Origin: Mizuhopecten yessoensis
Taxonomy: Eukaryota
NCBI RefSeq assembly: GCF_002113885.1
Contig: NW_018408136.1
Coordinates: forward strand, 638,447 to 702,446
Length of the DNA stretch: 64,000 bases
Direction of reading: 5' to 3'
The notes under the pieces are model-generated. The model was not told where the DNA came from. It saw only the letters and a program-made list of their open reading frames with translations, and did not search any database. The position numbers and the translations under genes are program-made. Position 1 is the stretch's first letter; every line of letters begins with the position of its first letter. Of this stretch, positions 3,983 through 55,845 are shown piece after piece.

Positions 3983-6900
3983 ATGAAGTTCTCGGTGACA
4001 TTGGAGGGTCAAAAAGAGTCAAAATTAGACGGCCATATGAATTCGAAGTCAGAGGGCAACGCAGAGTCTAAACAAGGGACCCGGACAGTGTCAAAGCAAG
4101 AGGGCAGACTTAAGTCAAAGCAAGAGGGCAGACTTAAGTCAAAGTCAGAGGGCAGACTTAAGTCAAAGCAAGAGGGCAGAATTAAGTCAAAGTCAGAGGG
4201 CAGACTTAGGTCAAAGTCAGAGGGCAGACTTAAGTCAAAGTCAGAGGGCAGACTTAAGTCAAAACAAGAAACCAACACAGAGTCAAAGCCAGAGGGCAAC
4301 ACAGAGTCAAAAACAGGGAACAAAAAAGAGTTAGCATCACAGGGTCGAATTAAGTCAAAGCCATTGGGCAACGGAGGGTCAAAACAAGAGACTCAAACAG
4401 AGTCAAAGCCAGAGGGCCAAAAACAGTCAATACCAGAGGACCAAATACAGTCAACACCAGAGGGCCAAATACAGTCAACACCAGAGGGCCAAATACAGTC
4501 AGCACCAGAGGGCCCATTACAGTCAACACCAGAAGGCCAAATACATTCATCACCAGAGGGCCAAATACAGTCAAAACCAGTAGGCAAAATACAGTCAAAA
4601 CCAGAGGGCCAAATACATTCATCACCAGAGGGCCAAATACAGTTAACACCAGAAGGCAAAATACATTCATCACCAGAGGGCCAAATACAGTCAAAATCAG
4701 TAGGCAAAATACAGTCAAAACCAGAGGGCCAAATACAGTCAAAACCAGTAGGCAAAATACAGTCAAAACCAGAGGGCCAAATTCATTCATCACCAGAGGT
4801 CCAAATACAGTCAAAACCAGTAGGCAAAATACAGTCAAAACCAGTAGGCAAAATACTGTCAAAAGCAGAGGGCCAAATACAGTCAAAACCAGAGGGCAAA
4901 ATACAGTCAATACCAGAGAACCAAATACAGTCAATACCAGAGGACCAAATACAGTCAACACCAGAGGGCCAATTACAGTCAACACCAGAGAGTCAAATAC
5001 AGTCAACACCAGAGGGCCAAATACATTCAACACCAGAGGGCCAATTACAGTCAACACCAGAAGGCCAAATTCATTCATCACCAGAGGGCCAAATACAATC
5101 AAAACCAGTAGGCAAAATACAGTCAAAACCAGAGGGCCAAATACATTCATCACCAGAGGGCCAAATACAGTCAACACCAGAAGGCCAAATACATTTATCA
5201 CGAGAGGGCCAAATACAGTCAAAACCAGTAGGCAAAATACAGTCAAAAGCAGAGGGTAAGACAGAATCTGCGTGTTTGAAAATAGACCTCACATCTGCAC
5301 CTGATTTATTGACGGACACAAGTAGTTTTCTTATACAGGTAGCCCGTAACGACACCCATGTTATATTTCAAATATTCATAAATAGAGTGCACGAAGGCCA
5401 GCATATCCATTACAAGTGTCCATACTTGCCTGCTCGTCCATCACGCATAACAGTAGTGGTTTATGTACTAGAAAACAACAAACATTCGTACACGGTCAGG
5501 GGAGGAGGCAAAGCTGCTGTAGCCGCTACCACAGGTAAATGTTATGACAGATATGTTATAAAGGGGCAATATTTAAAGTGGTTTTACAACTACAGTGAAA
5601 CATTTTTAAGTGTTAAGATTCGTATAGGAACAATGTCTAAATATTATGATAGTTATACAGTAATATTTTCATTATAATGATTATTTGAGAACGAATGTTT
5701 CTGTGTTATAATAATTATAGGCTCTATAACTCAATGAGTTACTATACTCAATGTTTAAGTGGTATAGTTGTAAATATAGGGTCAATATTCCAGTGGTATA
5801 CCAGTTATTAGATCAATGTTTAGTTTTAGTGTTTTGACAGTTATATGGTTAATGCTTTAATGGATTGACAGTTATACGACCAATGTTTAAGTGTTATGAC
5901 AGTTACAATGTGTAGGGTCAATATTCCAGTGCTATAACAGTTACACTGTGTAGGGTCAATATTCCAGTGTTATGACAGTTACAATGTGTATAGGGTCAAT
6001 ATTCCAGTGCTATGACAGTTAATAGTTCAATGTTTAAGTGGTATAGTTGTAAACAAAGGGTCGATATGTTAGTTATATTACAGTTATATGGTTAATAGTG
6101 TATGCAAAAGTGTATGCCTTATTATACAATTATGGACTTTTGTGCTGGTGAATATGATGTGATATGAACCTGAAAAAGCGATATTAACCGAGGCAAAGCC
6201 CATAACTGTTTTATAATATGCTTCAACGATAAAAAATGTATAGTTAACCTTTATCGGCACAAGCCTTCGTGTAAAATTTAGCCAGGGTTGAATCAATCAG
6301 TTCGGCATCGTAGCAATCGAAGACATCGTCAAGGTTCTTTTCCTGAAGCTAAGCATGGAGGACACACACCGCGTGTTCGGTGGCCTTTTGTTTTTAAAAA
6401 AACATCTTTATCTGCAAGTAGTTTTAGGGAAATTTGTGATGTAACGGAGACGAAGCAGCGGCCTTACTCTGTTGTCGTCTGACATATCGCGTTCCGTTCT
6501 AACTGCGCATGCGGTACGACAAGTTCCGGGAAATTTCCATATAGGCTATATTTTGAAATCAATATTCACCGGATAACAAGTCTACATGAGTTTTTGAGGA
6601 CTGGTCACGTGTATAGAATCCAGCCAATGTGATTGCGAGAAATTGTCAAGCACATACTTATATACAATTATGGACTTCTGTGCTGGTGAATATGATGTGA
6701 TATGAACCTGAAAAAGTGATATTGACCGAGGCGTTCAGGTTCATATCCCATCATATTTACCAGCACAAAAGCCCATAACTGTTTTATTATATGCCCCAAC
6801 AATAATATTTTGTATAGTTAACATTTACTTTAACGAGCCTCCGTGTAAAATTTAGCCAGGGTTGAATCCAACAGTTCGGTTTCGGAGACAAGGTGAAGAT

Positions 6901-9900
6901 TCTTTTCCTTAAGGTAAGCATGGAGGACACGCACTGCTTTCGGTGTCCTTAAACATAAATTGTAAAAATCGTGATATTTGAACCATATGTTATCCAGAAT
7001 TTGAAATGATAGAACTATCGATAACATCACCTGACATTACAGTCTAGTTCCGTGTTATATGTACTGACATAGCGATATATTTCTTACATTTTTAGGTACC
7101 GAACTTTCCTTGAAACTTACGCTAAATCAGTGTGATCCGTACCTGGATCTGCACATCAAGGACGCGGCAGAGGTAAGTCGATGCATTCGAATAAATAAGA
7201 TTGTAATATGATATCGTATTATGTATTTTACTGTGATGCATTTTCTTTCAGTTTTATGGCGTTTGTTGTACGTTAATCTGAATTGAACTTTCCAATACCT
7301 GTATATAAATTACTTCCTGTATTCATTGCTACTGATAATACTGATATATATTTGAGCCAATCTCTGTTTAGCCTGATGTATGTCTGAGTCCTTATTGGAG
7401 GTTAATGGTTCTGTAATACATATCAATCATTTGATTTTGACAAAGTAACATGAAATCTAAAACATGACAAGAGGGAACTTGTCGTTGACGTGGTTATAGG
7501 AAATCTGACGTTGACGTGGTAAAAGGGAATCAGATATTGACGTGGTTACAGGAAATCTGTACCAAAGAATCTGACATTGATGTGGTTACAAGGAATCTGA
7601 CGTTGACGTGGTAACATGGAATCTGATGCTGTGTGGTAACAGGGAAGCTGATGTTGACGTGGTTACAGGGAATGTGACGTTGACGTGGTAACAGGGAATC
7701 TGACGTTGACGTGGTAACAGGGAATCTGACGTTGACGTGGTAACAGGGAATCTGTAGCAGAGAATCTGACGTTGACGTGGTAACAGGGAATCTGACATTG
7801 ACGTGATAACTTGGAATCTAACGTTGACGTGGTAACAGAGAATCTGACACTGACATGGTAACAGGGAATCTGACATTGACGTGAAAACAGAAAATCTGAC
7901 GTTGAAATGATAACAGGGAATCTGTAGCAAAGAATCTGACGTTGACGTGGTCACAGGGAATCTGATATGTTGACGTAGTAACAGGGAATATGATATGACG
8001 TGGTAACAGAGAATCTGACATTGACATGGTTACAGGGAATCTGACATTGACGTGGTTACAGGGAATCTGATGTTGACGTGGTACATGTAACAGGGAATTT
8101 GTAACAGAGAATCTGCTGCTGACGTGGTAACAGGAAATCTTACATTGACGTGGTAAGAGGGAATCTGACGTTGACTTGGTAACAGGGAATCTGACGTTGA
8201 TGTGGTTACAGGGAATCTGACATTGACGTTGCAACAGGGAATTTGACGTTGACGTGGTAACAAGGAATCTGTAATGGAGAATATGACATTAACGTGTTAC
8301 AGGGAATCTGACGTTGACGTGGTAAATTTGAATCTGATATGTTGACATGATAAAAGGGAATCTGATGTTGACGTGGTAACAGAAAATCTGACGTTGACGT
8401 GGGTAACCAGGAATCTGACGTGGTTACATATAATCTGACACGGCTTCAGCGACTCTGACATTGACGTGGTTACAGGGAATCTGACGTTAACGTGATAACA
8501 GGGAGTCTGACGTTGACATGGTAACAGGGAATCTAACGTTGACGTTGTTACAGGGTACCTGACATCAACGTGGTAGCATGGAATCTGACGTTGACGTAGT
8601 AACAGGGAGTCTGTAACAGAGAATCATACGTTGACGTGTTAATAGAGAATCTGGCATTGACGTGGTAACAGGGAATCTGACGTTGACGTGGTAACAGGGA
8701 ATCTGACGTTGACGTGGTAACAGGGAATCTGACGTTGACGTAGTAACAGAGAGTCTGACGTTGACGTAGTTACAGGGAGTCTGACGTTGACGTGATAATA
8801 GGGAATCTGTAACAGAGAATCTGACGTTGACGTTGTGACATAGAATTTGTAACAGAGAATATGACGTTGACTTGGTACAGGGAATTTGTAACAGATAATC
8901 TGACGTTGACGTGATAACAGGGAATCTTACATTGACGTGGTAACAGGGAATCTGTAACAGAATCTGACGTTGGCGTGGTAACATGGAATCGGTAACAGAG
9001 ACTCAGACATTGACGTGGTTTCAAGTAATCTAACGTTTACGTGTTAACAGGAAGTCTGTAACAGAGAATCTGACGTTGACGTGGTAACAGGGAATCTGAC
9101 GTTGACGTGGCTACAAGGAATCTTACGTTGAAGTGGTGACAGGGAATCTGACGTTGACGTGATTACAGGGAATCTAACGTTGACATAGTAACAGGGAATC
9201 TGTAACAAAGAATCTGACGTTGACAACAGGGGATCTGTGATTGACATGGTCAAAGAAATCTGACGACGTTATTACGTTTACATAGTAACAGGAAATATAA
9301 CGTTGTTATGATAACAGGGAGTTTGATACAATAGGGAAACTATTGTTGACATGGTAACAGGGAAAGTGACGTTGACGTGGCCATAGGAAATCTAACGTTT
9401 AAGTGGTAATTTGGACTAGGGCAACTGAGTTGACGTTGAGAATCTTACGTTGACATGAAATGATAATAAATTCATCTTTGGCTCACTTAACACATCTTTG
9501 TTTTCTTTTCAGATTTCATATTGTTTTGATGTCGAATGTATAGGACCAGAAAAGTACATGATGTCAAATTTAGAGCACCTTAACCCTAAGAACGACGCCT
9601 TCATCATCATCATTCACCAGAGTTATCCGTCCTTGACTTACGTCATTCTGTACACCAGCACGTCAAACTTAACCTTCCCATTCAGTATTCTGCCAGCTAC
9701 AGTGTACAGCGTGGTCGTGTTCAACGTGAAAATCATCCCAGTTGATGCATTTCTAGGATATTCACATTCAAAGATGTACCAGTTCCGTTCGTGTAAGTTA
9801 ATATTGTTTATTGTGATATATTTTCGTAATATTTAATTCAGCTTTTTGTTCACAGCCAATTAGAAAAAAAAAGAAAAAGTGGAATTATAACATCGATTTT

Positions 9901-12335
9901 TAAAACAAGCAATTTGGTACTTTTTCTCCGATGAAACGATATTGGTATATTATATTGGTTATTGGTATCTTATATTTTAATAGTATTATCTAATACATTA
10001 CTTGTTCTCGTTTATTGTGAGATTGTTATACTGTATTGTGATAGTGTTCTCGTTTATTGTGATAGTGTTCTCGTTTATTGTGATAGTGTTCTCGTTTATT
10101 GTGATAGTGTTATACTGTATTGTGATAGGGTTATACTGTATTGTGATATTGTTATACTGTATCTTGATATTGTTATTGTGTATTGTGATATAGTTATCGT
10201 GTATTGTGATATTGTTATCGTGTATTTTGATATTGTTATCGTGTATTGTGATTTTGTTCTCGTTTATTGTGATAGTGTTCTCGTTTGTTATCGTGTATTG
10301 TGCTATTGTTATACAAATGTACTGTATCGTGATAGAGTTATACTGAATTATGTTATTGTTATACTGTATTGTGTTATTGTTATACTGTATTGTGTTATTG
10401 TTATACTGTATTGTGTTATTGTCATACTGTATTATGATATTGTTATACTGTATTGTGATATTGTTATACTGTATTGTGATATTGTTATACTGTATTATGA
10501 TATTGTTATACTGTATTGTGTTATTGTCATACTGTATTATGATATTGTTATACTGTATTGTGATATTGTTATACTGTATTGTGTTATTGTTATACTGTAT
10601 TATGATATTGTTATACTGTATTGTGTTATTGTTATACTTTATTGTGATATTGTTATACTGTATTGTGATATTGTTATACTGTATTGTGCTATTGTTTTAC
10701 TGTATTGTGATGTTGTTATACTGTATTGTGTTATTGTTATACTGTATTGTGATATTGTTATACTGTATTGTGTTATTGTTATACTGTATTGTGTTATTGT
10801 TATACTGTATTATGTTATTGTTATACTGTATTGTGATATTGTTATACTGTATTGTGATATTGTTATACTGTATTGTGCTATTGTTATAAAAAAATGTACT
10901 GTATTGTGATAGTGTTATACTTTATTGTGATATTGCTATATTGTATTGTGTTATTGTTATACTGTATTGTGATATTGCTTTATTGTATTGTGATAGTGTT
11001 ATACTGTATTGTGATAGTGTTATACTGTATTGTGTTATTGTTATACTGTATTGTGATATTGCTTTATTGTATTGTGATATTGCTTTATTGTATTGTGTTA
11101 TTGTTATACTGTATTGTGATATTGCTTTATTGTATTGTGATATTGCTTTATTGTATTGTGATGTTGCTATATTGTATTGTGATAGTGTTTTACTGTATTT
11201 TAAAACCAACCACAATGTCGCCCATGTAGCGCATTTGGAAAAAAATGTTTTGGTGAATCTTTAGAAAATTGTGACAAGCGTTGACCGATGAATGGGACCT
11301 CTCAACTTATTGTTGGTCGGTAAACAAGTTCAGTGCAACTTCGATGCAAGGTTGGGTTCTGTGTTAAACGGTGGTCATACGCGGTATTAAACATGAAAGT
11401 TCGGAAACTCGACTAACCATACGTTAATGTCTGATGAAAATAATTCAGCACAGGATTTTTCTTGTTTTTGACAAATATTTAAACCAAACACTTCAGTTGA
11501 TAAATTGATACCAGGTTGAATACCGTTGCAAAAATATACAATAAAACCCCGGTTATCTAAGGTTAAAGCAGAGTTGACGTTCATCTGTTACCAAGCCTTT
11601 CTGTTTTCTGATTTATTTCCAGGCATGACTCAAAACGAAATAATGGAGCTGTATTTCAAAGCAGTTAGATACCTTTCAAGACGACCTCGTGCTTTTGATG
11701 TAATTCCCCATTTTTACCGTAATAAGTCTCCTGAATACTTTCATGACATAATGTGGAACCGCATGGGTGTGATGCACAAATACGACAAGAACTGGGGCGG
11801 CGATCAGGCGTCGACACTTAACCAGAATATCAAGGGTCTTTTCTTCAGTTCTCAGATCGACCCAAACACGGGGCGGCTTCCAGACTTCTCCTACTACGGC
11901 CCGGTCAGGTTACATGTCCCGTCAAAGGCTTTCCTTCACCAGAACATGAACATGTACTTCGCTGACTTTTACTGTCATTACGTTAACCACAAGGTTCAGT
12001 TTGTATTGACGGTCAAAGGAAGTGCCACAGACCAGTTCTGCAGTGAACGTTTGTTGTTGGTCGACCAGGAACACAATCCGTTCCTTGTTCGTGTTGGTAG
12101 CGGTCACCAAAGTTTCATAAAGGTGACAAAGAACATCACCGTGGAGTTGTTCTACACAGAAGACGTGCCTATAAAAACTCTCATGCTATTGTTCCCGGGG
12201 CAGGTATTTTTTCTGCAGACAATACAAAAGGGAAAAGCCAAATCTATGGTCATTGGTATCCCTAAAAACAAGGACTGTAAGGTTTGTAATTTGGACTGTT
12301 TTCTCCGAGCCAGACAAGCAGTACACGGACGCTAA
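3983..12335 (+). CDS. PHYHIPL: PHYHIP/PHYHIPL-like protein, paralog 1; join(3983..5534,7096..7172,9513..9792,11623..12335), 873 aa; possible extra 5' coding exon 3356..3442
   Basis: All introns are GT-AG with compatible phases (1,0,1) and there are no stops. The last exon has FYRNK..GLFFS..YG..MYFADFYC..FC..NPFL..VELFYT..CKVCNL, which matches the PHYHIP C-terminal domain. Exon 9513-9792 has the FN3 motif ILPATVYSVVV. The symbol denotes the family, not proven orthology. Confidence 0.85.
4093..5260 (+). repeat. Coding 24-bp tandem repeat (8-aa units KSKxEGRL, then QSxPEGQI) in paralog 1
   Basis: CAGTCAAAACCAGAGGGCCAAATA-like units, roughly 45-50 copies, with the frame preserved throughout. Confidence 0.95.
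5720..6100. repeat. Degenerate intronic tandem repeat
   Basis: GACAGTTA...GGGTCAATATTCCAGTG and CAATGTTTAAGTG units recur. Confidence 0.7.
6118..6960 (-). mobile_element. Crypton-like (tyrosine-recombinase-derived) non-autonomous element, head-to-tail partial dimer
   Basis: 6118-6390 is repeated at 6656-6950, and 6665-6780 forms a long hairpin around CCGAGGC. The minus-strand peptide AVRVLHAYLKEK...LDSTLAKFYTEAR resembles the N-terminal part of Crypton/DUF3504-type proteins. Confidence 0.55.
7480..9460. repeat. 26-bp intronic minisatellite in paralog 1
   Basis: The unit is CTGACGTTGACGTGGTAACAGGGAAT, with occasional partial units. Confidence 0.95.
9990..11200. repeat. 21-bp intronic minisatellite in paralog 1
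   Basis: The unit is TATTGTGATATTGTTATACTG. Confidence 0.95.
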
Positions 12336-13560: not shown

Positions 13561-16004
13561 TCGTTGTGCTTGTGATAGGTTTTCTTTAATTTTCATTTCG
13601 AGGATTGTGTTGCAAAGTAGTTTGGATACATTCTGGCAGGCTTTGCATGGAATACAAATGTACTTAAGTGTAAACTATTCAAGGTATTCAAAATAGGTAA
13701 ATTTGTTACGTTATTCTACTAAGGTTTCGGAACACTAATGACCAGTGTTCATAATCAACGAAATGGTAAATAAACGTTTCCTTTGTTTGGCCTGCTGCAT
13801 CCACAAACAACATTTAAAATATACTTTTCATTTCGTCGTACTTCTCGTGACTATATTGACCTGGTTGAGATCGATTTTGAGTTCAAATTAAGACTTTGTT
13901 GACACTTGTTTTTATCCCATTATACAAATCAACCGTTAACCAATATCCAAATGTCATCCGGCTATGAAAGGGTATTTATGAAAGTGATTCGTTGTTCGTT
14001 TGGCTGTTCTAGTATACATAAATATTTGTAAAATGCTTCAGTTTTACAACTCCCGTGAAAACTACCTTATTTGCTCCTCTTTCTTGGTAATAAAACAAAA
14101 ACCAAACAAGAAAACCAAATGTAAAAGTAGCATTTTCAAACAAATAAAATAAAAAGATCTAATAATTCTGTACATCAAATATTTAACTATGGACAGAATT
14201 TACCAGTATGGTAACATTTAAAATAATCTATTTCGGTAGCGTCTAATGTCAGTGAATCCTGGTTCAAAACATAATGAAAGGAGTGAATTACAGTTATGCT
14301 TAAAGCAAGGAGATAAGACCATGCGTTCGTGAAGGGTAGGCCTCCTCTGTTTCATCGATTGTACCTGCAATTTAGGTAAAACAATTGTCGTTATGTTCAA
14401 GCTAACAGAAGGACCTCTTCCGATGATTTATATACTTAGAACATATGAGCACCCGGGATTCATATTGTTTGAAGAAGTAACTTTGAGCGGAGATAAGTGC
14501 GCCATATATGACCGATAATATAAGTATTAATTGTTTATGTGTAATCGATGGTTTACCTTACTCGCATAATGTTTTACTGGATTTGTAAATCAGCGATTTA
14601 ACACTTTCATAAAAATCTGTTCCGTGGTTTTGCATTTTTTTATCCTCTATGTAATTCAAACAGCATAAGCACTGAAGTGGCATTCTTGTGACAAACATTA
14701 GATACAAAAATAGTATTCCGATAATTATATAATGGCTTTTTGAAAGAATGATATTTATTAAACTTGTATATATTATTTCATAAATATCAAAATTAACAAA
14801 CTGTACAGCAACTATACATTACATTTACGAATAAATACCGCTCAGGACATTCAAAATACCGCTCAGGACATTCAAAATAACAAAATAACTCATTGGCAGA
14901 TATGCGTCAAAGAAGGAAGCTTCAACGACAAGTAACAGGATATAAAAACAAAGCAACATAACAGTAATAACAGATATATTATATAAGAAGTTAACTTATC
15001 ACACATGACTAAAATACATAATTCTTATAAAACATTACATATACATACATGCTAAAGTAACAAAGGATACAAATTGACAGGATTGCTAGATAAACTGTGA
15101 CAATGTCATATGCTAGAAATCAAATTATAGTTATAACCAACTTGCTTTACAAGTTATGAGGTTGAAGTATGTTGCATGATATAACATTATTATGGCACAA
15201 AGAGTAACACACAACACATAAAACATATAGACCAAACATGTATCTACATTGTTTAAGATTGAATGGAGGTAAGTCGCTTTAAGTGCTGTAAATTTAAGCT
15301 CTTAGAAACCTGACGAGAAAGAAACAAACAGCTAACGACAGCAAAACCTGTATTTTACATTTACACCTATTGCGTCCCAGGTGTGCAACATCAAACAGAA
15401 CACTGTATAGTGTTTTTTGCACTTTTGACTGGCGTTCCAACACCAAGGCATCATCCAATCGTAAATATCTCTTTCCGTTGACCTCTGTTTTTTTGTATGT
15501 TGGCAGTCCTCTGGTGTCTGAAATCATAAGTCGAAAACTTTAATCTGATCAAGCCAGTTTACAATATCAAAAAAACCCATAATTGGCTATAAATGTTTTT
15601 GCGGTTTATAAATAATCCATTTTATTTCAACAATGATTTTAAAACTGAAAAGTAATCATCTTGATTAAAATTTAAGGTCCTTCCCTGCATCTTACTATTG
15701 TACTTGTGTTTGTAGCGTGTTTACAGTTGTGCCAGCCTAACGAACTCGAATTAAAATTTGATAATATTTATGATTTGAAAATAGTGAATTTGTCCTTGTA
15801 AAAGGAAATATAAACAAATTCTTTTCAAAACATAAGATTGTTTTGGGCCTTTCAAAAATATATATGAAATACAATTTCCAAATTTAAGGTCACTGAATAC
15901 ATCTGCATTATTGTACATTTGTACAAACTACTGCATCTGAACAATTTAATTTGAAAATACAATAAATAGCAAGTCCGACTATACCCTAACGTGAATCCTT
16001 TCTC

Positions 16005-19000
16005 ATGGCTCCCAAGCTATTCAAAAACACCTTCCTCATAAAAAAAACCCCTCAAAAACTTGGCCCATGTAGGGCACATATGCGTGTGCAGCGATCTCGC
16101 TCACTTTCCTCGGTATCTCGATCCCAACAGAGGTCAGAGACTACATCACCAGACAATAGACCAAAGAAAGAACTTAGAATACCCTGGGGCAAATCTGCTG
16201 GGTCCGATCTGAATGTCACCTATGGCAAAAGATCGGAGGACACGACAAACATATGTAATGTCCTACTGGATCTCGATGACGAGATGGAGACGAATACCCC
16301 AAAATTCGCGCTTCAACTCCATCGAAATCCAGTCTAAATAGAACGAAATGAACAATATAATTATCCAATGGAACATCCGCGGATTAAAGGCAAATACAAA
16401 TGTATAGAAGAATTTCAGCATCTATCAAAAGAGTTTAACCCCGCCATGTTTTGTCTACAAGAAATTATGCTTAAAACCCGATCACCTTTAGGAATTTCAC
16501 ACTCTACAGTAACATTTTAACTGAAGATAGCAGAGCAGCAGGTGATGCAGCTGTAGCTGTCCGTAAGAATATTCCTCGCCGAAAGATAAAGTTAAACACA
16601 AATTTACAAGCTGTTGTTGTCTGTGCAGCATTCCACAGACAAATAACCGTTTGTTCAATTATCTTCTTCCGAGTATTGTTTTCACCTGTGAGAAACTCAA
16701 TAACATCGTCTCCCAACTTCCAACACCATTCATAATCATCGGTGATTTTAATGGTCATAATAACCTGTGCGGATCTCCGAACACAGACAAGAAAGGAAGA
16801 CGTATTGAGGAATTTATAGATAAAAACAACTTGTGCCTTTTTAACAATACTCCTACTTATTTACACCCTGCTACAGGCTCTCGTACCCACATTGATCTGT
16901 CATTATGCCATCCTTCCATTCTACTTGATTAAGACTTGAAGGTAAATAACGATCTATGTGGGAGTGACCACTTTCCCATTTTTCTTCAGAATATTGGAAC
17001 TCCTCGTGATGATCCTCCCAACACCGTTCATAATCATCGGTGATTTTAATGGTCATAATAGCATGTGGGGATCTCCAAACACAGACAAGAAAGGAACATG
17101 TATTGAGGAATTTAAAGATAGAAACAACTTGTGCCTTTTTAACAATACTTCTACTTATTTACACCCTGCTACAGGCTCTCGTACCCACATTGATCTGTCA
17201 TTATGCTATCCTTCCATTCTACTTGATTAAGACTTGAAGGTAAATAACGATCTATGTGGGAGTGACTACTTTCCCATTTTTCTTAAGAATATTGGAACTC
17301 CTCTTGATGATCCTCTACATCGATGGAATGTGAACAAAGCAGATTGGGTCCAATTCCAACACATGTGCAACGAGAAGCTTACCACAAATAACTTTACTAA
17401 CCTCGACGACCCAAGCTAAACGTTTACTGAAACATTCACTTTTATTGCCCAAAAGACGATTCCAAAATCCGCTCCAAAACCTACGATGTTCCTTTTATCA
17501 GAAGAATCTTTTAAAACATGCAGTTATCGGGCAGCTTCTCTAAGACGCTATGATTTGCCCACTGCTTCAAACTACAGTGATTTTCAAATTTGGCCGGTAA
17601 AGACTCGGCGATCAATTAAAATTGACAAAAGATACAGCTGGATAGAATATGTATCCAAGGTATCAACAAATACCTCCTCCAACAAATTACGAGATATGAT
17701 TCGATAAACAACCGGGAAAAAGAAAAAGTCTACATCCTCCCACCATTAATAAAAACTGAATTGTTTCGTCTAAATCCGAAATTGTTGATGCATTTGCAAA
17801 AAAACATAGCTAAAAACTCATCCCCTTTAAACCACTCCCCAACATTCCTGTCTTTAAAGAAAATAAAAAGAAAAGAAACGGCTAAATTTCAAATCATCAA
17901 ATAAAGAAAGTTACAATGAACCATTTACCAGAATTTGTTGATTCGCTTGGAAAATCACAGGACTCTGCTTCAGGTCCAGATTATGTTCCATATTAATTTT
18001 TCAAACACCTACCGGACTCGTCAATAAGATGCTTTCTTAACATATTTAACCAAGTTTACGCTTCCGGAAAGGTTCAAGATTCGTGGAAGAACTCCACAAT
18101 TATACCTTTATCAAAGCTGGGAAAGGATGCTACTGATCCAAACAACTATCGTCCTATTTCTCTGACTAGTTGTGTATGTAAAACTTTAGAACGAATGATT
18201 ACCACAAGACTGGTTTGATTTCTTGAGACCAACGATATAATATCCTCTATTCAAAGTGGTTTTAGAAACAGAAGAGGGACAAAGAGAGGCTTTCGCCAAG
18301 AAGGAACACCTTGTTGCCGTGTTCTTTGATCTTGAGAAGGCCTATGATACTACATGGCAGTATGGCATCATGAAAGATCTTCACGACGTTGGTGTACGTG
18401 GAAACCTCCCCTCTTTTATAAATAATTATCTATCAGATAGACAATTCAAAGTTCGTGTTGGTTCAACTTTTTCTGAAACGTCTAAACAGGAAAAAGGAGT
18501 CCCACAGAGTGGAATCCTATCAGTTACCCTGTTTGGTCTTATATCAATGATATAGTCAAATGTCTTGGTCAGTCAACAGAAGGGTCGTTATTTGTGGATG
18601 ACCTCTTGATCTGTAACAGATCTAAGAACATGCACAAATTCAACAGATTTTAAACAAATTACAAATTTGGGCGGACGAAAACGGATTCGAATTCTCTAAA
18701 ACCAAAACTGTGTGCATGCATTTCTGTCAGAAATTAAAAGCAAACAATGACCCAAATCTTACACTTGATGGCATTAAAATTCCTTGTTGAACAAACCTAA
18801 TTCGTCGGCCTCATTTTTGATCCGAAACTCTCTTTCATACGACATCTAAAGTATCTGAAAGATAAGTGTTCCAAGGCGCTAAACATTATACGAGTCCTTT
18901 CTCATACTGATTGCGGAGCGGACCGTGGAATGCTTTTGCGCCTATACAGATCACTTATTCGAACAAATCTCGATTTGGTTCTATGGTACACTTTTTACCT

Positions 19001-19588
19001 GCATATGCTAGACCAAAACAATAATCAAGGGCTACGTCAGCCCTTGTATATTTTCGAACAACACATGTAAAAAGTCTTTACGTGGAAACTAAGGAACCAT
19101 CCTTTTATGTCATTACAGTTTGCAGCTCAATTAAAATCAAACCCTAAAAATCCTGCTTTCGACCAAGTGTTCAAAATGCCAAAACATATTTATGCAAAAC
19201 CCAAAACTTCTGCCAACATTTGGTTTCCGATCCTGCAAGAACTCAACATAAAATTGACTGACATAGCTGAATGTAATATATCTGATGTTCCTCTATGGAC
19301 CCCCCCCCCCCCCCCCCCCTGATTTAAACTTTACGTTACATTACGAGGGAAATCCAGTGTAATGCCCGAAGAACACATGATGACCTCCTTTCGGTAATGC
19401 ATTTTGAAGTTCCCTTCTCATACACAACTTTACACCGATGGTTCCAAAGAAGGTGAAAAAGTGGCAGCAGCCTGCTGTTCCGCTAATTCTTGCACTTCAG
19501 TTCGACTACCAGACGGTGCCTCCACCTTTTCTGCTGAAGCATGCGCCATTGGTTTGGCCCTTATCCATATCGATGAACACTGCATTAA
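16005..19588 (+). mobile_element. I/Nimb-clade LINE, 5' part (possible ORF1 end, APE, RT, start of RNase H), pseudogenised
   Basis: ORF2 starts MNNIIIQWNIRGL at 16348. Motifs GDFNGH, GSDHFPI, NYRPISLTS, FFDLEKAYD, GVPQ, LFVDD and YTDGSK are present, with many stops and frameshifts. Confidence 0.9.
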
Positions 19589-22500
19589 CCTTTCAAGACT
19601 CCTTACTAAGCATAATTTATCTAGCCTTATTGATAAACCTACACGTATGACTCAGGAGAGCGCCACTTCTATTGATGTTATCTTTACAACAACCGAAACA
19701 TAATTATAAATACTTATACACCACCACCCTTCTGTAGTGATCATTCCTCTGTGCATGCATCAATTTTATTTGGTGTATTCAAACAAGTAAGTCATAAGAA
19801 AAATATTTTAAAATATGAAGAAGGTGATTTTGAAAGTATGAATAACACTCTTCTTGATGTTGACTGGGTGAATCTATCTTCAAACCAGAACTCTAATACA
19901 TTTAACAGTACCATAACTGATCTATTCATGGATCAGGCAAATGACTTCATTCCTGTTAAAGTAATAACAGTACGTCCTAATGATAAACCATGGATGAACA
20001 ACAACATAAGATTAAAGATGAGACAACGCAATAGAATTCACAGAAAGGCATAATTAACAAATAGTACATATTTCGGATTCACAGGAATGAAGCCATTGAC
20101 CTGATCCGTGAAGCTAAGTCAACATATATCAAAACCCTAGAACACTCTTTAAACGACAATAAGATTCCCCCAGATAAATGGTGGAAAATTGCTAAATCTA
20201 TCTCTAACTTCACCAATAAATCGTCTCCAATTCCTCCTCTTGTAATTAATAACCAAGCCGTTCACTATCCTTTTGATCAAGCTGAGGTCCTCAATAATCA
20301 CTTCATTAATATCTCCACATCCTCACCTGATCTCCAACTACCTCAGACAGCACAACCAGCAAATCCTTATTCACTATCTAATATTAATATTACTGAACAA
20401 TATGTTGCTGACTAAATTAATATTCTTAATATAAATAAGCCCCCAGGACCTGATGGAATTGTTCTCAAAAGTATTAAAAGAATTAATTCCTCTCTTAAAT
20501 TACCCCTCATGATCTTATTTAATAAAACATTAGAAACAGGAGTGATTCCAAATAGCTGGAAACAGGCAAATATAATGCAGTTTATAAGGGTAATGGATCA
20601 TCTAATGATGTTTTAAACTACAGACCTACTTCAGTAACTTCATGCTTTAGTAAAATAATGGAAAAAATTGTATTTAAATATCTTTATACATTGTAACTAC
20701 CTGTTGGAGAATTCTATAAGCACCAATCTGGATTTACACCTGTTGATTCAACAGTTAATCAACTCTTGTTTATATATAATGAAATTTTTAGTAATATGGA
20801 CCAGGGTAAGGAACTTAGATTTATTTTCTGTTATATTAGCAAAGCATTTGATAGGGTTCGGCATAAAGGTCTAATTCATAAACTGAGGACTTATGGTATT
20901 GATGGAAATTTGCTACTCTGGTTTGAAAATTATTTAACAGACAGAATGCAAACAATTAGCACTGAAGGATATCACTCTCAGTTTAGGACTACAAATGCAG
21001 GGGTACCTCAGGGATCTATTCTGGGACCACTCCTGTTTCGTCTTTATATTAATGATATTCATGACAATGTTTCTACTAATATTAAACTTTTTGCAGATGA
21101 CACTTCTATGTTTGTAATCATAGACAAAAATCCAGTTCAGGCAGCCCAGGATCTCTCGAATGACCTTGTAAACATTAGTGAGTATATATATGGGATATCA
21201 ATTTTAACCCAAATAAAACAAAGTCAGTTGTATTTTCTAGAAAACATAACCACGAACAACCCCTATATCCTTTCAAAACAATCAAATCACTGCTTCAAAA
21301 ACACATAAACATTTAGGACTAACTTTTACAGACGATGCATCATGGAAACAGCACATACAGATTATATATGAAAAAGCATACAACAGATTAAATATTCTTC
21401 GTTATATCAAATCTAAGATAGGTCGTAAATCATTAATTAAAATATATATTGCATTTTTTAGACCAATTTTGGAGGATGCAGACATTGTATGGGATAATTG
21501 CACCTTACAATCTATTGAATTACTTGAATCTGTACAACTAGAAGCAGCTAGGATTATAACTAGTCTTTGTTCAGGGACATCACACAATAAACTCTATAAT
21601 GAACTTGGTTGGGAAACACTGTCTGCAAGAAGGTGTACACATAAACAAATAATGATGTATAAGATAATGCATGGACTCTCACCACAATCCTTGCAAAATG
21701 TCACAAATCCTTTTATTAACAATCATAATAGCAATCCCTACTCTCTTAGACAAACCAGACTCTTTTGACAGTTTTTCTCCCTTTATGTGCCGCAATGTCA
21801 ACACTATGGATACTGATATATATTGAACTCCCTATCTCTTGCTCTGTTTAAAAAATTACAAAATAAAGATAAAGTTAAAGACAGAGAAGTAACTTCAATT
21901 TTTAAAAACGACGGTGAAAGAAGGGTAAATATTATTCTTTGCCAATTAAAAAATACCTGTAGTAATTAAAATTCTGATTTATATCGTGACCATCTAATAG
22001 ATAGTCCAACTTGTGCTTGTTCTTTTGAATACAAAAGAGCCTCTCATTATTTCTTCAATTGTCCACTGTATATCGAACAACGAAATACTTTGTTTACTTC
22101 TTTGAATAATATTAGTAATCATAACCATATGGATTTAAATATATTTTTTCAAGGTTGTCCTACATGTGATCTGAATATAAACTGACAGATGCTAAGTCAT
22201 ATTCAGATTTTTATTGGAAAACTAGACGTTTTAATTTTTATATGACGTAGAAAGCCATGATGCATTATCTGAATTGTTAATGGAATAACAAAGTATATGT
22301 ATACACTGTTTGATGCATAATGATAAATGAGATTACAGTTGAGTAGGTTTGTTATATCTTGTTTATTTTCTGTTCAATATAATAAACATAATAATGTATT
22401 GCCCTTTTGTCACATTATTTAAATTTGTACTTTTTACTCATAAACAGTATTAGTAGCAATGAGCTGTGCACATACATGCACATTGACTTTTGGTCAAAGT

Positions 22501-22857
22501 CTATTCTTACTGTACATATGACATACTGACTGTGACTATGCTTTATTTAATAAGAAAAATAATTGTATGTGTGATGGATGTATGATTGTGAGTTGTTTGT
22601 GTATTGTTATTGGGATGTCCTATGATGAGTTTATCTTCTTTGTGTTTGTCATGATGGCGTTATCTCCCCTTATCCTTTAGTTAGTATTATATATTTTTTC
22701 ATTTCAAAGTATCCTTAAATTAATTAATCACTATTGTTGTAACTACATTGTATATATGATCAAATTTTGAGCCACTCATGGAAAGAATTTATATAGGCTT
22801 GCCTGTTATTCAATCTATTTGACTATTACATCTGTCAATAAAATTTGTTGAAATGAA
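19589..22857 (+). mobile_element. 5'-truncated CR1-group LINE nested in the RNase H region of the I/Nimb element
   Basis: It has the APE end, RT motifs (DISKAFD-like, GVPQGSILGP, LFADD) and an AATAAA+(GAAAT)n tail. It is flanked by the direct repeat ATGAACACTGCATTAA at 19573-19588 and 22858-22873. Confidence 0.92.
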
Positions 22858-22873
22858 ATGAACACTGCATTAA

Positions 22874-23721: not shown

Positions 23722-23859
23722 CCAAGCTTTTCATATGCAGCCTTCTCTGTTCGTAGTCGGGTCGTAGATCAAAGGAAGGGGGTATCTCCCGGGGGACCCA
23801 ACGCCTTTGCGTATTAGGTATTTATTGATGTTCTGTGTAGATATGAAGTATGTGAGGTT

Positions 23860-43108: not shown

Positions 43109-46044
43109 ATGGTGCAAAACAACAAACACTGGCAACACGATGGAAATTACGAGGACGACGAGGTAAGATAACATGGACCATTTTATCGTTTCACTTTAAT
43201 AAATATACTTTCATTTAGCTACTGAAAGAATACATTCACTTACACTTTTATTCAAATGAAAATATCCAAGTCAAAGAAATATAGAATGGAAGTTAAGAAC
43301 TCTATGTTTATATATTTTACATTACCGTGTATGGCAGTTATTCGTGGTTTGGGTACAATTTTGTCTTCATCTTACCATTCACAGGTAAGCAGATTTATTT
43401 TGAGAAGCCATGTAGGAAAAAACAAGTTACCTTTCCTAATAGACATCAAACGCACAAAAGAACTTCAACCAGATTTCTTATTTTTGCAAGTATTCAACAG
43501 CAAGAGTCAATTGATATTTCATTCCTTCTCTCGTCCATCACAATGTCGCTTGTTTACGTGTCCTGATGACGTATTGAGGAGGTCCTTGGCTACCGTTACT
43601 GTGTACGGTGTAAAAACCTTGAATACTGATACAGGTGTGGCGTATCACATCCTGATGGGAGGCAAGGCATCAATGAACCTCACACGGGGTAAATATCGTT
43701 TTTGCTTTGGTTATTGGTGCCGGTATTGGATCTTTATCAATATGTTAAGTCACTGGTGCAGTAAGTGCCTCATGTCATTTCATATTTTCTTCTCAAAAGA
43801 CGTGTTTTGCAGCTTATAAGAGGTTCTTCTGGTAAAAGGTCTTCAGGATATGACGGAGAGGAAATACTGGTATATACGACAATTTCACATTAACGCAGTA
43901 ATCCGCCCATGTGCTCATGCACAAAGTACAGTTGTTGACAAATGTGACACGATATAACATATTTTCCTATTTCCTATCAAAACAGATAATTTGGAATTGT
44001 ATTGAATTGAGGAAATATTTTGTTCCATATTCAAGTAGTATGAATGGATACAGTTTGTAATTAACACTTTGGCCGATCATCTTGGAGTGAAAGCAAATGC
44101 TATCTAGTAGCTATTCATTCTGAATAAATCTGCCGGAAAATCCATCGTCGAGTTTTTAGCTGTTCTGTTTTAGTATAATTATTGAAGAACAGGTAGAATT
44201 ATAAATGATTTAATTTTAATATCAAACAGGTGCTACAATCGACTACATAATGATAGCTATGCGACCTCTCACAACATACCTAGATCTACTAACGGATGCT
44301 CCAAATAAGGTTAATATCTTGCTCGCAACATCAAATTTGATCTAATTCTAATACATTAAACGGCTTGATTTCTTTTCAAATCAATGGTTTTTCTTAGACA
44401 ATGATTAAAGACCAAGGTAATATTTTGTATTAGGGCCTTACATTGTATATGATATGATCAAATCTCATTCTACTATAAAGTATACACAATTTTACATATC
44501 CCACCCTAATGAGTAAAAAGGGTTATGTAAAAACGAATGAGACACATAAATGAAGAAATTATCCTACTACATTAGTCAGGTAAAATGTCGATGACGTTGT
44601 AATTAAATTTCATCTGTCCTATCTTTACCGTGTATACTCGTCTTTACAGGTAGCGTATCATGTGGACGCGGTCTGTATCGGCCCGATGCGGTACATGTTG
44701 ACAGACCTTCATCACAGGGGCGAGCACACGGACACCTTTATTATCACCCTCTATCAGGTCCACCCTCCATCTGCGTGTATTATGTTCTACTATGGTTCAG
44801 AAACAGAGTATGAGATCCCCCTCTGCCTCAAACCCGTCTCAGAGTATAAACTACAGCTCTTCAGAGTCAACACGAGACACGTCACAGATGACGTGTACAA
44901 GTTTATTGGAAATTCACACTCAACCGTAACGGCGTTTAATACATGTAAGTGTATAAAGATCAGTTAATGCTATGATTGTCTTTACATGTATCGCACAATT
45001 TGCACTGTAGCACATATAATTTGAAACAACATTGCATAATAGTCTAAATATATGTGGAGCGATTGATGTCACTAGAGGCCGTTTTATTAGTGGTGACCGT
45101 AATATGTTTTCTCTATTAGTGCTGATTTTAAACTTCGATATTCTCTTTCAGTGTTGGTCGGAGATATGAAAGCTTTTATTGATACTAGCCTATGTATATT
45201 TTAGTCTCAGCGTTGGCTTTAATATAAAGGCTTTAGTAATGGTTTCAATCAATTATATTTTATATCACTGCTTGCTGTCTTCCACATTTGCAGGTTCATT
45301 CAATTGTTTTATGCTTCCCGGTAATGTGTACATGTATATACTTCAGATATGACGCAAGCTGAGGTGGTGGAACTCTACAATAAGGCTGTACATTTTGTGT
45401 CCAGACGACCGCCCTATTCTAGTTACCTTTCTCATTTCTATCGCAATAAGTCTGAAGAGTACTTTAACAATATTATGAGAACAGATGGTGTGATGCACAA
45501 GTACGACAAGAACTGGGGAGGAGATCAGGCCTCCACACTCAACAAACAAGTACAGGGTCTGTTCTTCAGCGCAGTCGTGGACCAGGTGACACGTTTACTT
45601 CCTGACTTTTCCTTTTTTGGGCCACGAAGGTTACATGTACCGACATACCTCCTTTTGAACAACAACATGAACATGTATTTCTCTGACTTCTACTGTCACC
45701 GTGTCAATCATAAGGTCCAATTTGTCCTTACGGTCAAGGGCAGCCCGACTGACCACTTCTGTAGAAAACGACTCGTGCTGGTTGACCAGACCAACAACCC
45801 GTTTCTCACGAGAGTGAGATGCGGTTTCACAGAAATCGTCCGAGTGACAATGAACGTTACAGTGGAAGTATTCTACACCGAGGACGTACCAGCCAAGGCA
45901 TGGATGTGTCACGATAATGTGTTCTTTACCACAACGAAACAGATGGGAAACGCTTTGGACATGGTAAACGGTATTCCAAAAAATATAAAATGTCAAATAT
46001 GTAATCTTGACTGCTTCCTTCTCGCTGAGACTTTGAAAGCATGA
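43109..46044 (+). CDS. PHYHIPL: PHYHIP/PHYHIPL-like protein, paralog 3; join(43109..43162,43385..43688,44230..44309,44650..44944,45347..46044), 476 aa
   Basis: Five exons join in frame through GT-AG introns (phases 0,1,0,1). Each exon is similar to its paralog 1 counterpart (GGKA, YLDL, CIGPxxYM), and GVMHKYDKNWGGDQASTLN and HKVQFVLTVKGS are identical. Confidence 0.85.
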
Positions 46045-48134: not shown

Positions 48135-51100
48135 AGGACAATAACAGAGTCGTTGGAGGGATACTAATACATAAGACAATAACAGAGTTGTTGGAGGGAT
48201 ACTAATATATAAGACAATAACAGAATCGTTGGAGGGATACTTATACATAAGACAATAACAGAGATGTTGGAGGGATAATACTGATACATAAGACAATAAC
48301 AGAGTCGTTGGAGGGATTCTAATACATAAGACAATAACAGAGTCGTTGGGGGGATACTAATACATAAGACAATAACAGAATCGTTGGAGGGATACTTGTA
48401 CATAAGACAATAACAGAGATGTTGGAGGGATACTAATATATAAGACAATAACAGAATCGTTGGAGGGATACTTGTACATAAGACAATAACAGAGATGTTG
48501 GAGGGATACTAATATATAAGACAATAACAGAATCGTTGGAGGGATACAAATACATAAGACAATAACAGAATCGTTGGATGGGTACTCATACATCAGACAA
48601 TAACAGAATCGTTGGAGGGATACTAAGGAGGGATACCAATACATAAGACAATAACAGAATCGTTAGAGGGATACTAATACATAAGACAATAACAGAGTCG
48701 TTGCAGGGATACTAATACATAAGACAATAACAGAGTCGTTGCAGGGATACTAATACATAAGACAATAACAGAGTTGTTGGAGGGATACTAATATATAAGA
48801 CAATAACAGAATCGTTGGAGGGATACTAAGGAGGGATACCAATACATAAGACAATAACAGAATCGTTGGAGGGAGACTAATACATAAGACAATAACAGAA
48901 TCGTTGGAGGGAGACTAATACATAAGACAATAACAGAGATGTGGGAGGGATACTAATACATAAGACAATAACAGAATCGTTGGAGGGATACTTATACATA
49001 AGACAATAACAGAGATATGGAGGGATACCAATACATAAGACAATAACAGAATCGTTGGAGGAATACTAATACATAAGACAATAACAGAATCGTTGGAGGG
49101 AGACTAATACATAAGACAATAACAGAATCGTTGGAGGGATACTAATACACAAGACAATAACAGAGTCGTTGGAGGGATACTAATTCATAAGACAATAACA
49201 GAATCGTTGGAGGGATACTAATATATAAGACAATAACAGAATCGTTGGAGGGATACAAATACATAAGACAATAACAGAATCGTTGGAGGGGTACTAATAC
49301 ATAAGACAATAACAGAATCGTTGGAGGGATCCCAATACATAAGACAATAACAGAGAAGTTGGAGGGATACTAATACATAAGACAATAAAAGAATCGTTGG
49401 AGGGATACTAATACATAAGAAAAAACAGAATCGTTGGAGGGATACTAATACATAAGTCAATAACAGAATCGTTGGAGGGATACTAATATATAAGACAATA
49501 ACAGAATCGTTGGAGGGATACTTATACATAAGACAATAACAGAGATATGGAGGGATACCAATACATAAGACAATAACAGAGTCGTTGGATGGGTACTAAT
49601 ACATAAGACAATAACAGAATCGTTGGAGGGAGACTAATACACAAGACAATAACAGAGTCGTTGGAGGGATACTAACACATAAGACATTAACAGAGTCGTT
49701 GGAGGGATACTAATACATTAGACAATAACAGAGTCGTTGGAGGGATACTAATACATTAGACAATAACAGAGTCGTTGGAGGGATACTAATTCATAAGACA
49801 ATAACAGAATCGTTGGAGGGATCCCAATACATAAGACAATAACAGAGAAGTTGGAGGGATACTAATACATAAGACAATAAGAGAGTCGTTGGAGGGATAC
49901 TAATACATAAGACATTAACAGAATCGTTGGAGGGATACTAATACATAAGAAAAAACAGAATCGTTGGAGGGATACTAATACATAAGTCAATAACAGAATC
50001 GTTGGAGGGATACTAATATATAAGACAATAACAGAATCGTTGGAGGGATACAAATACATAAGACAATAACAGAGATGTTGGAGGAATACTAATACATAAG
50101 ACAATAACAGAATCGTTGGATGGGTACTAATACATCAGACAATAACAGAATCGTTGGAGGGATACTAAGGAGGGATACCAATACATAAGACAATAACAGA
50201 ATCGTTGGAGGGAGACTAATACATAAGACAATAACAGAATCGTTGGATGGGTCCTAATACATCAGACAATAACAGAATCGTTGGAGGGATACTAATAGAT
50301 ACTAATACATAAGACAATAACAGAATCGTTGGAGGGATACTTATACATAAGACAATAACAGAGATGTTGGAGGGATACTTATACATAAGACATTAACAGA
50401 GTCGTTGGAGGGATACTAATACATAAGACAATAACAGAGATGTTGGAGGGATACTAATACATAAGACAATAACAGAATCGTTTGAGGGATACTAATACAC
50501 AAGACACTAACAGAATCGTTGGAGGGATACTAATACATAAGAAAAAACAGAATCGTTGGAGGGATACTAATACATAAGACAATAACAGAATCGTTGGAGG
50601 GATACTAATACATAAGACAATAACAGAGTCGTTGGAGGGATACTAATACATAAGACATTAACAGAGTCGTTGGAGGGATACTAATACATAAGACAATAAA
50701 AGAATCGTTGGATGGGTACTAATACATAAGACAATAACAGAATCGTTGGAGGGATACCAATACATAAGACAATAACATAGATGTTGGAGGGATACTAATA
50801 CATAAGACAATAACAGAATCGTTTGAGGGATACTAATACAAAAGACACTAACAGAATCGTTGGAGGGATACTAATACAAAAGAAAAAACAGAATCGTTGG
50901 AGGGATACTAATACATAAGACAATAACAGAGGCGTTGGAGGGATACTAATACATAAGACAATAACAGAATCGTTGGAGGGATACTAATACATAAGACAAT
51001 AACAGAATCGTTGGAGGGATACTAATACATAAGACAATAACAGAATCGTTGGAGGGATACTAATACATAAGACAATAACAGAATCGTTGGATGGATACTA

Positions 51101-51255
51101 ATACATAAGACAATAACAGAATCGTTGGAGGGATACTAATACATAAGACAATAACAGAATCGTTGGAGGGATACTAATACATAAGACGATAACAGAATCG
51201 TTGGAGGGATACTAATAATAAGACAATAACAGAATCGTTGGAGGTATACTAATAA
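48135..51255. repeat. 38-bp satellite (about 80 copies)
   Basis: The unit is GACAATAACAGAATCGTTGGAGGGATACTAATACATAA. Confidence 0.97.
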
Positions 51256-53679
51256 TAATAAAAAATGAGACACATCATAAATCCTAACAATTGGAGGCAA
51301 AACATTGACATTCGGATGGTACGTGTTTTTCATATATCACATGTGTACCCGTAATGTGTGTTTACCTCGTATACATGGTGTTCATTTCGCAGCTAAATGG
51401 TACCTCCTCTCATGTATATTTAATATACTTGTATCTTATTTAGATTTATGATATATCAAATGTTTATATCTAAGTTCAGAATTTACATGTATGAATTCTA
51501 TGAAATTTCTTCAACAGATTATATTTTGCATTAAAACGTGTTAATGTTGGACAAAAATGTCACACTTAACAAAACCATTTACATATGTTCTAAATGACTT
51601 TCTTAAAAATCATTGTTCATGCAAGAACGAAAATGTGATTGTGTCAAAAGTGTGCAGGAATCAGAAACATTATTATTTGGTGACATGTTCTAATGACAAC
51701 AAAACTACTACTAAACAGTAGTTTTTTCTGGTAATATTTGTTAAGATTAAGGACGATATCAGTTCATCAAGCTGATAAAGGATTTTGCTACGTGACTCTT
51801 TATATTGCATCTTTTGCAGTACTTAGTTATCCTCGTAAATTTACTAAACGTAACAAGTAACGACTATTTGACTGGTCACGTGATTAACTGGTGGTTGCTA
51901 GCTTCGACTATTGACTTGCCACTTTTGATGTTATCGAATGCACATAATACCAAACATAATGATGACTATGATAAGGAATACAGGGTGATCCTCAGCTCCC
52001 ACAACCGCTAGGTGAAATTGATGGATAGATTTGAAGGGACAATATTGCTAACTTTTTTCAATTTAGCGTGCCTCTGGCGTAAGTATTACTAATGAAAAGT
52101 GTAGCTGTAAAATTACTTTGATTAGAATGTTTTTGATTGATATATTATCCAAGTAATAATACATTGAGGGGTCGGATGGCGATTGCGTAGATGATTCGAT
52201 CCCCCACCCCCGACCACCGAAGGGAGCTCGACACGTCGTCCCCTTCCATTTATTTGGCCTCAAACGATGATGAATACCACACACATTATTTTAACAGAAA
52301 AGATATATTTTGTTGGTTCGTTCTATCTTTATCTCATGATTCGTCCTTTTTAAATCATAACTTATCGAAGTGAATTTAATTACTGTAAAATATGGCAGAG
52401 TAAAAGTTTCTTAACAGCTAGATATTAAATCTTAACTGTATGCGTATACGTATACCTGTTATCATACATACACTATTAAGATTATTTCCGGTAAGGAAAC
52501 TACAATTCCTGGTATACATGACGTTTCATTATCCAATATACCCACAGTATCACATACTAACCTTATTCATTATACAATAACAATGTACCGGGACCCCAAT
52601 GCATCTGAGCAGGTTATCCCATACCTGTTTACCCAACAATTCATTACAATGTAGTACTCTTATCTTACAAAGTAGTCAGTAGTCATCATTGAGTTGTAAC
52701 CAACAGAACTTCATGCAAGTCATTTAATCAGTTAGTATTAAATACTTATATGCCAGTAAATACATTTCTCACCTCAACCCATTGTTGTCATACACGTTAC
52801 ATCGTCCGATTCAAGTGCTGCTAACATCAACTGCTAACATCAACAACCCTCTTACCTACATCAATAGCGACCACCAATCACGAAGAAAAGTTGACTGGCA
52901 GGCGTGTGTTTGCTGTCAATAGATGAAATGTATTGAAAATAGTTCAGATTTACAGTTGTATTTTGATGAAGATAATATGTTGGCCGTTGTCAGCAGTTAA
53001 GAACACTTCAACTGAATTTAACAACCTATCGGCCTTAAATTTAAGAGTGAGTATCTGAATGAAGTCAATGGAGTGACAAAGGCATTTATTGATATATGTA
53101 TATACATGTAAGTCTCTGACATACATATACCTGTCAAACTGTAATACAACCCTAACGTTTAAAGAGCAACAGATGTCAGACAATGAACAGTGGACTAATC
53201 AGTATTCTGATATCTGTTATTTGGTCCTTTTATCGGACTATATACACATTTATAAAACAAATGTAACAAACCCGGATGTGCTTGACTGGGAAAACAAAGC
53301 ACATCATGATTGCAGTGTGAACACATGTGCTTATCCTTGAAAGATAAGTGCACCTCCGGAAGTTTTGTTAACAAATTATCGCGTTGAAGATTCGGTATGA
53401 CAGTGAGGTGAGTTCTATATTCTTTAATCATAAACGTTTATGAATCCACTGTTAGAATTTACGCATAAACAATACATTTCTCTATGTTTCATAACACTAT
53501 GGACACTCCTTGACCTATAAACTATTATATATCCTTGATACAATATACAAGCATCGAGGATGCATTACGACATGAACTACCACTACATACCCGACAGTAT
53601 CCACACGCTTGTATAAGCAGTAATATCTTTGAGTAAGCGATGATTATTTTCCTAAATGAATCAAAGTCTCCAATTTTTA

Positions 53680-54541: not shown

Positions 54542-54793
54542 ACCAGGAAGTCCTAACTGAAACATTTCGCAGCGACAAAACTACCATGGTGGTACTGTAT
54601 TGAATAACCGCTTTATCTCTTGCTTTTATACCTTTCTCATTTTGGGGTAGACCTAGCACGGAGCGTGGAGACAGAGACCTGCACAAGCAATTACAGGGGT
54701 CATTTAAAAAATCTCTTTATGGAACGTAGCGTATAGGATATGTCTGAGTGTGTAGACGCAAATGTGTGACTACAGGTAAGCGAACAGGTAAGA
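54542..54793 (+). promoter_or_regulatory. Candidate promoter and non-coding first exon of paralog 4
   Basis: ACCAGGAAGT (ETS) is followed by AACTGAAAC (IRF core). Tandem CAG|GTAAG donors at 54776 and 54788 lie about 1 kb upstream of the 55786 exon. Confidence 0.3.
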
Positions 54794-55785: not shown

Positions 55786-55845
55786 ATGGCTTTGGAAATG
55801 AAACAATGGGAACATGGGACTGATTCCGATGATGACCAAGACGAG
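55786..55845 (+). CDS. Probable first coding exon of a fourth PHYHIP-like paralog (MALEMKQWEHGTDSDDDQDE); the rest would lie beyond the window
   Basis: It has an AG|ATG start and a phase-0 GACGAG|GTAAGT donor. The peptide resembles paralog 3 exon 1 (MVQNNKHWQHDGNYEDDE, also ending GACGAG|GTAAG). Confidence 0.6.

Follow-up and report, generated by a model that had tools for sequence, protein, structure and literature searches.

PHYHIP-like genes in a Mizuhopecten yessoensis tandem array carry a domain predicted to adopt a divergent ADP-ribosyltransferase fold

PHYHIP (PAHX-AP1) and PHYHIPL are two conserved vertebrate genes whose products have been without a biochemical function since their cloning (PMC7953787). 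The known clades of ADP-ribosyltransferases (ARTs) carry the triads H-H-h, H-Y-[EDQ], and R-[ST]-E; remote animal families with the ART fold (TASOR, TEX15, LRRC9, and NEURL4) were found by structure or profile, and a 2021 catalogue of ART-like domains in humans does not mention PHYHIP (PMC7955679). Here, we analysed a 64,000-nucleotide stretch of the scallop Mizuhopecten yessoensis genome (contig NW_018408136.1, positions 638,447 to 702,446; hereafter the window), which holds part of a tandem array of PHYHIP-like genes whose C-terminal PHYHIP_C domain is predicted to be a divergent ART. At a probability of approximately 0.5, we read the array as a tandem family that evolves by birth and death and encodes intracellular effector enzymes that use NAD and work in a stress or defence setting. 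The tandem array alone is ordinary, and the value lies in the fold assignment. The genes are already annotated as PHYHIP-like; the ART assignment seems to be new, as our literature search found no paper on PHYHIP and ARTs or on PHYHIP and molluscs, and structure classifications (ECOD, CATH) may already place the domain.

Three PHYHIP_C exons were identified by six-frame reading and Pfam at 11623–12335, 33670–34373, and 45347–46044, the last exons of genes A, B, and C (E values of 1.7e-30, 3.4e-26, and 3.8e-27, respectively). Their PF19281 scores of 92.6–106.7 bits, against a curated cut-off of 27, place them in the PHYHIP family, and an FN3 domain lies immediately ahead of the C domain, as in that family; the PHYHIP-like identity proposed in a preliminary description of the locus is thereby confirmed. 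The scallop genes share with vertebrate PHYHIP and PHYHIPL the same C domain (E values of 1e-26 to 1e-30; Atlas TM of 0.61), the FN3 domain ahead of it, and the lack of a signal peptide. They differ from the two conserved vertebrate genes in having two FN3-type domains and variable repeats, at least eight intact tandem copies, copy turnover, and mosaicism.

The modelled C domain matched structures of the ART superfamily in 39 of 42 and 19 of 19 cases over model residues of approximately 24–201; the matches were weak, with Z scores of at most 4.2 and high root-mean-square deviations. The invariant Arg32 falls on the catalytic position of ART strand beta1, in register in 13 different proteins, and thus supplies the His or Arg expected there. 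No sequence bridge to ARTs was found by PDB phmmer/hmmsearch, in PHROGs, PADLOC, or NCBIfam, by phage tblastn, in viral contigs, or by a Pfam search on 148 family members, and Foldseek gave no significant match against PDB and BFVD. The low scores, high deviations, and lack of Foldseek or sequence support are what would be expected if the likeness were due to chance or convergence and PHYHIP_C had a fold of its own, which we consider very improbable because nearly all of the matches come from one superfamily, the single invariant Arg falls on the catalytic position, and a His-x-Thr sister family described below has ART neighbours. On these models, the ART fold of PHYHIP_C and the register of Arg32 have good support and are highly probable. 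The effector-like character attributed to the C domain in the preliminary description was borne out in the form of this predicted fold.

Residue conservation, measured over 148 sequences at 30–50% identity, was 100% for Arg32 and Gly91, 99% for Lys54 and Asp113, 98% for Arg94, 97% for Phe72 and Ser88, 96% for Lys34 and Glu173, and 55% for Ser74. The polar residues Arg32, Lys34, Lys54, Arg94, Asp113, and Glu173 are kept in all eight intact paralogs of the array. In gene C, the codons of Arg32, Phe72, Ser74, and Glu173 are located at 45442, 45562, 45568, and 45865, and the Arg32 codon of gene A is at 11718. A plain R-S-E assignment was rejected on residue conservation: the S-x-S/T motif of beta2 is replaced by G-L-F-F-S, which contains the conserved Phe72 and the poorly conserved Ser74, and the Q/E-x-E motif before beta5 is absent, position 171 being variable (Trp 28%, Thr 14%, His 14%). 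The domain does not fit the H-Y-E clade of PARPs (PF00644) either, as it has R-N-K instead of H-G-S/T, and no Pfam PARP match occurred among the 148 members. The beta2 motif of PARPs reads G-I-Y-F-A, and its resemblance to G-L-F-F-S puts Phe72, rather than Ser74, at the second triad position. Glu173, the candidate acidic residue of beta5, is located on the strand 171–176, 25–28 residues before the alignment end, compared with 20–23 in PARPs and Scabin. The likely triad is R-F-E, i.e., Arg(beta1)-Phe(beta2)-Glu(beta5), outside the known clades; the registers of Phe72 and Glu173 are inferred from the model. Cys116, His121, Cys215, and Cys218 (97–99% conserved) suggest a putative zinc site.

The small H-type ARTs (DUF952 2JQN, DarT, Tpt1/KptA, and Tox-ART-HYD1) differ from PHYHIP_C, which has Arg-Asn-Lys at beta1 and Phe at beta2, adds a large (~70-residue) insertion between beta3 and beta5 as well as the Cys/His tail, and shows no detectable sequence similarity to them. 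The R-S-E ARTs (Scabin, pierisin, pertussis S1, and ARTC) have in common with it a beta1 Arg in register with Arg77 of Scabin and a conserved Glu on a late strand, whereas PHYHIP_C lacks the S-T-S and Q/E-x-E motifs and is intracellular, the R-S-E enzymes being secreted. Compared with the ART-like domains of TASOR, TEX15, LRRC9, and NEURL4, PHYHIP keeps the conserved Arg and Glu.

Catalysis by the C domain is predicted from these models with moderate probability. The atypical beta1 and beta2 motifs, the weak conservation of Ser74 and position 171, and the large insertion would also suit an ART-fold pseudoenzyme limited to ligand binding (NAD+, ADP-ribose, nucleic acid, or protein) and serving as a scaffold like RCD1, PARP13, or TASOR, and RCD1 is a precedent of an inactive ART fold (PMC6175486). 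We consider this rather improbable, as inactive ART folds usually lose such residues as the six polar ones, which are invariant or nearly so across the 148 sequences and the eight intact paralogs. If the enzyme reading is correct, the C domain would bind NAD+ and either modify a protein or nucleic acid with a single ADP-ribose or hydrolyse or deplete NAD+, while the FN3 pair would dock on a partner, target, or scaffold and thereby position the enzyme.

A predicted ART fold with named candidate residues gives the whole PHYHIP family a testable enzyme function and opens the question of PHYHIP function to standard NAD+ assays; if true, it adds to the ARTs a family whose triad belongs to none of the three known clades. 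Vertebrate PHYHIP presumably keeps the Arg, Phe, and Glu of the candidate triad. A broader proposal, that PHYHIP_C is an unrecognised active R-F-E family, ancient in animals, repeatedly expanded in molluscs as an interferon-like defence effector, and represented in vertebrates by PHYHIP and PHYHIPL as overlooked brain ADP-ribosyltransferases or NADases, is tentative and on balance unlikely.

The same profile finds stand-alone relatives of 170 amino acids, arrayed in the M. yessoensis genome (G000) at C5591:92.9-114 kb, C2286:11.7-117 kb, and C5434:1.317-1.369 Mb, with a further locus at C845:650 kb. This sister family aligns with PHYHIP_C at 98% probability and shares its Glu, but reads F-Y-H-x-T in place of F-Y-R-N-K of the window genes and has Trp at beta2. 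Among named Atlas clusters, DarT/PARP and Arr are nearest to it (0.90–0.93), and unnamed phage and bacterial clusters are closer (0.96–0.97), all of these values being lead-grade. In chordates, a family of this shape occurs as a fusion with AIG1/GIMAP GTPases. Several of the stand-alone copies carry stops, and three His-type copies were located in Argopecten irradians (L010:1354-1863). For molluscs, the FN3-linked and stand-alone forms together point to a candidate family of effectors whose copy number turns over in a farmed species.

The encoded proteins follow one plan: an optional low-complexity repeat, two FN3-type domains (N1 and N2, of which N2 was shown to have the FN3 fold), the predicted divergent ART domain, and a probable Zn-binding tail. 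Gene models were built from splice sites, and database queries consisted of single exons or public protein identifiers, the joined models being used for local alignment only. Genes A, B, and C are intact and lie on the forward strand, with GT-AG introns and without internal stops, and their last three introns have identical phases (1, 0, 1), as had been noticed in the preliminary description. The coding exons of gene A are located at 3983–5534 (a repeat region followed by N1), 7096–7172 (a linker, phase 1 to 0), 9513–9792 (N2), and 11623–12335 (the ART-fold exon given above). The repeat encodes approximately 425 amino acids in an 8-residue (24-bp) unit of Gln/Ser/Pro/Glu/Gly/Lys, and the ATG sits immediately 3' of a splice acceptor; a Bactofilin match on this repeat was rejected, as the region is of low complexity and has no passing stretch. 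The exons of gene B are at 31214–31736 (a Ser/Thr/Val-rich lead and N1), 32069–32154 (linker), 33207–33474 (N2), and 33670–34373, and its model has 526 amino acids. Gene C consists of a short, acidic first coding exon (43109–43162), an N1 exon (43385–43688; all-beta and FN3-type by homology to N2), a linker (44230–44309), a further exon (44650–44944), and the PHYHIP_C exon (45347–46044).

The gene A model (873 amino acids) equals the public protein P0026 (RefSeq LOC110458461), and the gene C model (476 amino acids) equals P0025 (LOC110458466), at every residue, both from M. yessoensis. Gene B was absent from all protein search results with single-exon queries, the joined protein not having been used, and may be unannotated. 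The fourth start suspected earlier is real: 55786–55845 on the same strand encodes the first 20 residues of the public protein P0172 (480 amino acids), and this gene D continues beyond the window, intact, at G000:C4809:703576-711989. Neither a signal peptide nor a membrane helix was detected by a simple hydropathy scan, as the preliminary description had stated for the signal peptide. A second RefSeq isoform of gene C (501 amino acids, P0167) starts inside an intron with a hydrophobic lead (43256–43384), and RNA contigs carry both spliced and unspliced sequence there.

A genome search showed that the array spans 642 kb to 872 kb of contig C4809, and exon-wise mapping identified eight intact genes (A, B, C, D, E, F, H, and J). 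Copies G and I are both broken: the N2 exon is frameshifted in each, and a deletion of approximately 1.4 kb has taken out most of the C exon. The array also includes part of a C exon at 713 kb and, at 723–725 kb, inverted fragments. A unit of 58–62 kb is triplicated at 90–99% identity. The array is under birth-and-death turnover, and copy turnover, pseudogenes, and mosaic paralogs are found together in it, as in diversifying immune gene families. Mosaicism was significant in a site-compatibility permutation test (p = 0.0005); for example, gene J is F-like except in a part of its C exon, where its identity to E is 98%. Unequal crossing-over and conversion would add, lose, and mix copies, so that similarity is kept in the catalytic exon and gradually lost in the first FN3 exon.

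The long identical blocks that the preliminary description reported in the C domains exist between A and C (19 and 12 amino acids), but not in gene B, whose identical blocks reach at most 8 amino acids and whose identity to the others is 45–47%. The N-terminal exons have diverged, as described, but are not barely alignable: identities were 21–28% among A, B, and C where global alignment works and 40–64% among the non-identical members of C–J, and the exons of all copies share one profile. Every copy has the same pair of FN3-type domains as its folded N-terminal part, and only the upstream repeat differs, so the idea of unrelated, exchangeable N-terminal domains was rejected, and with it that of variable modules as distinct sensors. 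Pairwise ratios of nonsynonymous to synonymous substitutions (dN/dS) were 0.37–0.63 in N1, 0.36–0.67 in N2, and 0.23–0.68 in C, giving no evidence for values above 1 in the N-terminal exons; the single near-identical pair F and H had 1.05 on 19 changes. For most pairs, dS was 0.8–1.5 in N1 and 0.3–0.6 in C, which indicates that the 3' exons were homogenised more recently. The conserved C and divergent N parts are due to stronger constraint and conversion, without demonstrated positive selection; the N-terminal divergence reflects a first FN3 exon that is under relaxed purifying selection and has been homogenised less, rather than dN/dS above 1.

A profile search returned 851 clusters at 50% identity, and a tree was built from 160 rows that did not include vertebrate sequences. 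In this tree, C, D, E, F, H, and J form an M. yessoensis-specific clade (SH-aLRT 92) that nests with A in a scallop clade (98), supporting the local lineage-specific expansion proposed earlier, and gene B is a distant, old lineage outside the clade of A and C–J. The oyster, limpet, and Gigantopelta copies form separate clades of their own, and Crassostrea virginica and Pecten maximus also have neighbouring copies; accordingly, no 1:1 orthology across molluscs, nor a low-copy 1:1 relation to PHYHIP/PHYHIPL, was seen in these rows. Family members are present in nematode, leech, and chiton. Among distant homologs, P0028 has two tandem PHYHIP_C domains, and P0120 has a weak dsRNA-binding-like domain (E value of 7e-5, below the cut-off).

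If the family is catalytic, an immune role is slightly favoured, the most likely use being a response to stress or pathogens. The interferon-induced mono-ARTs PARP9/10/12/14 and the fish Gig2 arrays are lineage-specifically expanded and carry an intracellular ART domain behind targeting modules. The scallop family resembles them in its expansion and in its predicted domain order, but is not PF00644 and lacks macro, WWE, and zinc-finger readers. Alternatively, the enzyme may be active but serve housekeeping, neural, or gonadal functions, in an array formed by near-neutral segmental duplication of a repeat-rich region; this would agree with the triplicated unit, with dN/dS below 1, with vertebrate PHYHIP and PHYHIPL being proteins of brain and testis (PMC7953787), and with the lack of any literature found on immune induction. 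Parallel expansions in several mollusc lineages, the stand-alone arrays in this genome, the 851 clusters, patchy presence among RNA runs, and an ISRE-like element ahead of gene B make this reading improbable.

This element joins an ETS site to a tandem IRF motif and resembles an interferon-stimulated response element (ISRE). It is located at 23960–23979 on the reverse strand and is followed, after approximately 320 bp, by two splice donors (24300 and 24336), possibly marking the 3' end of a non-coding first exon in gene B. Twin donors 12–36 bp apart occur upstream of B, C (41670/41692), and D (54776/54788) and possibly end such exons in all three genes. The strict ISRE pattern has four matches in the window against 1.2 expected, only one of them near a possible start. 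Overlapping GAS (STAT) and kB-like sites lie in intron 1 of gene A (6524–6538, forward strand) and are singly not above chance, kB and GAS counts in the window being at chance level. Genome-wide enrichment of the relaxed ETS-ISRE pattern (8 versus 11 in the control) and promoter elements shared by paralogs were both rejected, the paralog promoters having no common aligned element beyond a short dispersed repeat. Thus, the immune-type motifs reported earlier are present, but are neither common to the paralogs nor, for kB, GAS, and ETS-ISRE, above controls, and the promoter sequence is suggestive for gene B only.

Spliced transcripts exist: an RNA contig of gene C from one run spans all four introns, and a contig from another run joins two. 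Two raw 2026 RNA runs yielded 0 and 1 reads of 11–12 million, which hints at restricted expression. The fully spliced gene C contig (run X7) misses 4 nt in the N1 exon (window 43420), which would shift the frame and possibly represents a null allele or a contig error. A contig of run X1 matches D at 22 of 22 listed differences at 45606–45816 and then C into the 3' untranslated region; either the allele is a hybrid of D and C or the assembly is chimeric.

Introns and spacers of the array contain large minisatellites at 2617–3248, 7483–9202, 10013–11199, 24569–30206, and 48137–51258 (units of 48, 26, 21, 35, and 38 bp, respectively), which may favour unequal crossing-over. Open reading frame translations revealed LINE retrotransposon fragments (endonuclease, reverse transcriptase, and RNase H-like) between the genes at 16000–23500, 36000–39000, and 57000–63300. 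A DDE_Tnp_4 transposase reading frame of 491 amino acids (59552–61027), with a weak SWIM finger match, is apparently intact save one N, and its insertion (~59251–61898) interrupts a LINE copy paralogous to that at 19589–22653.
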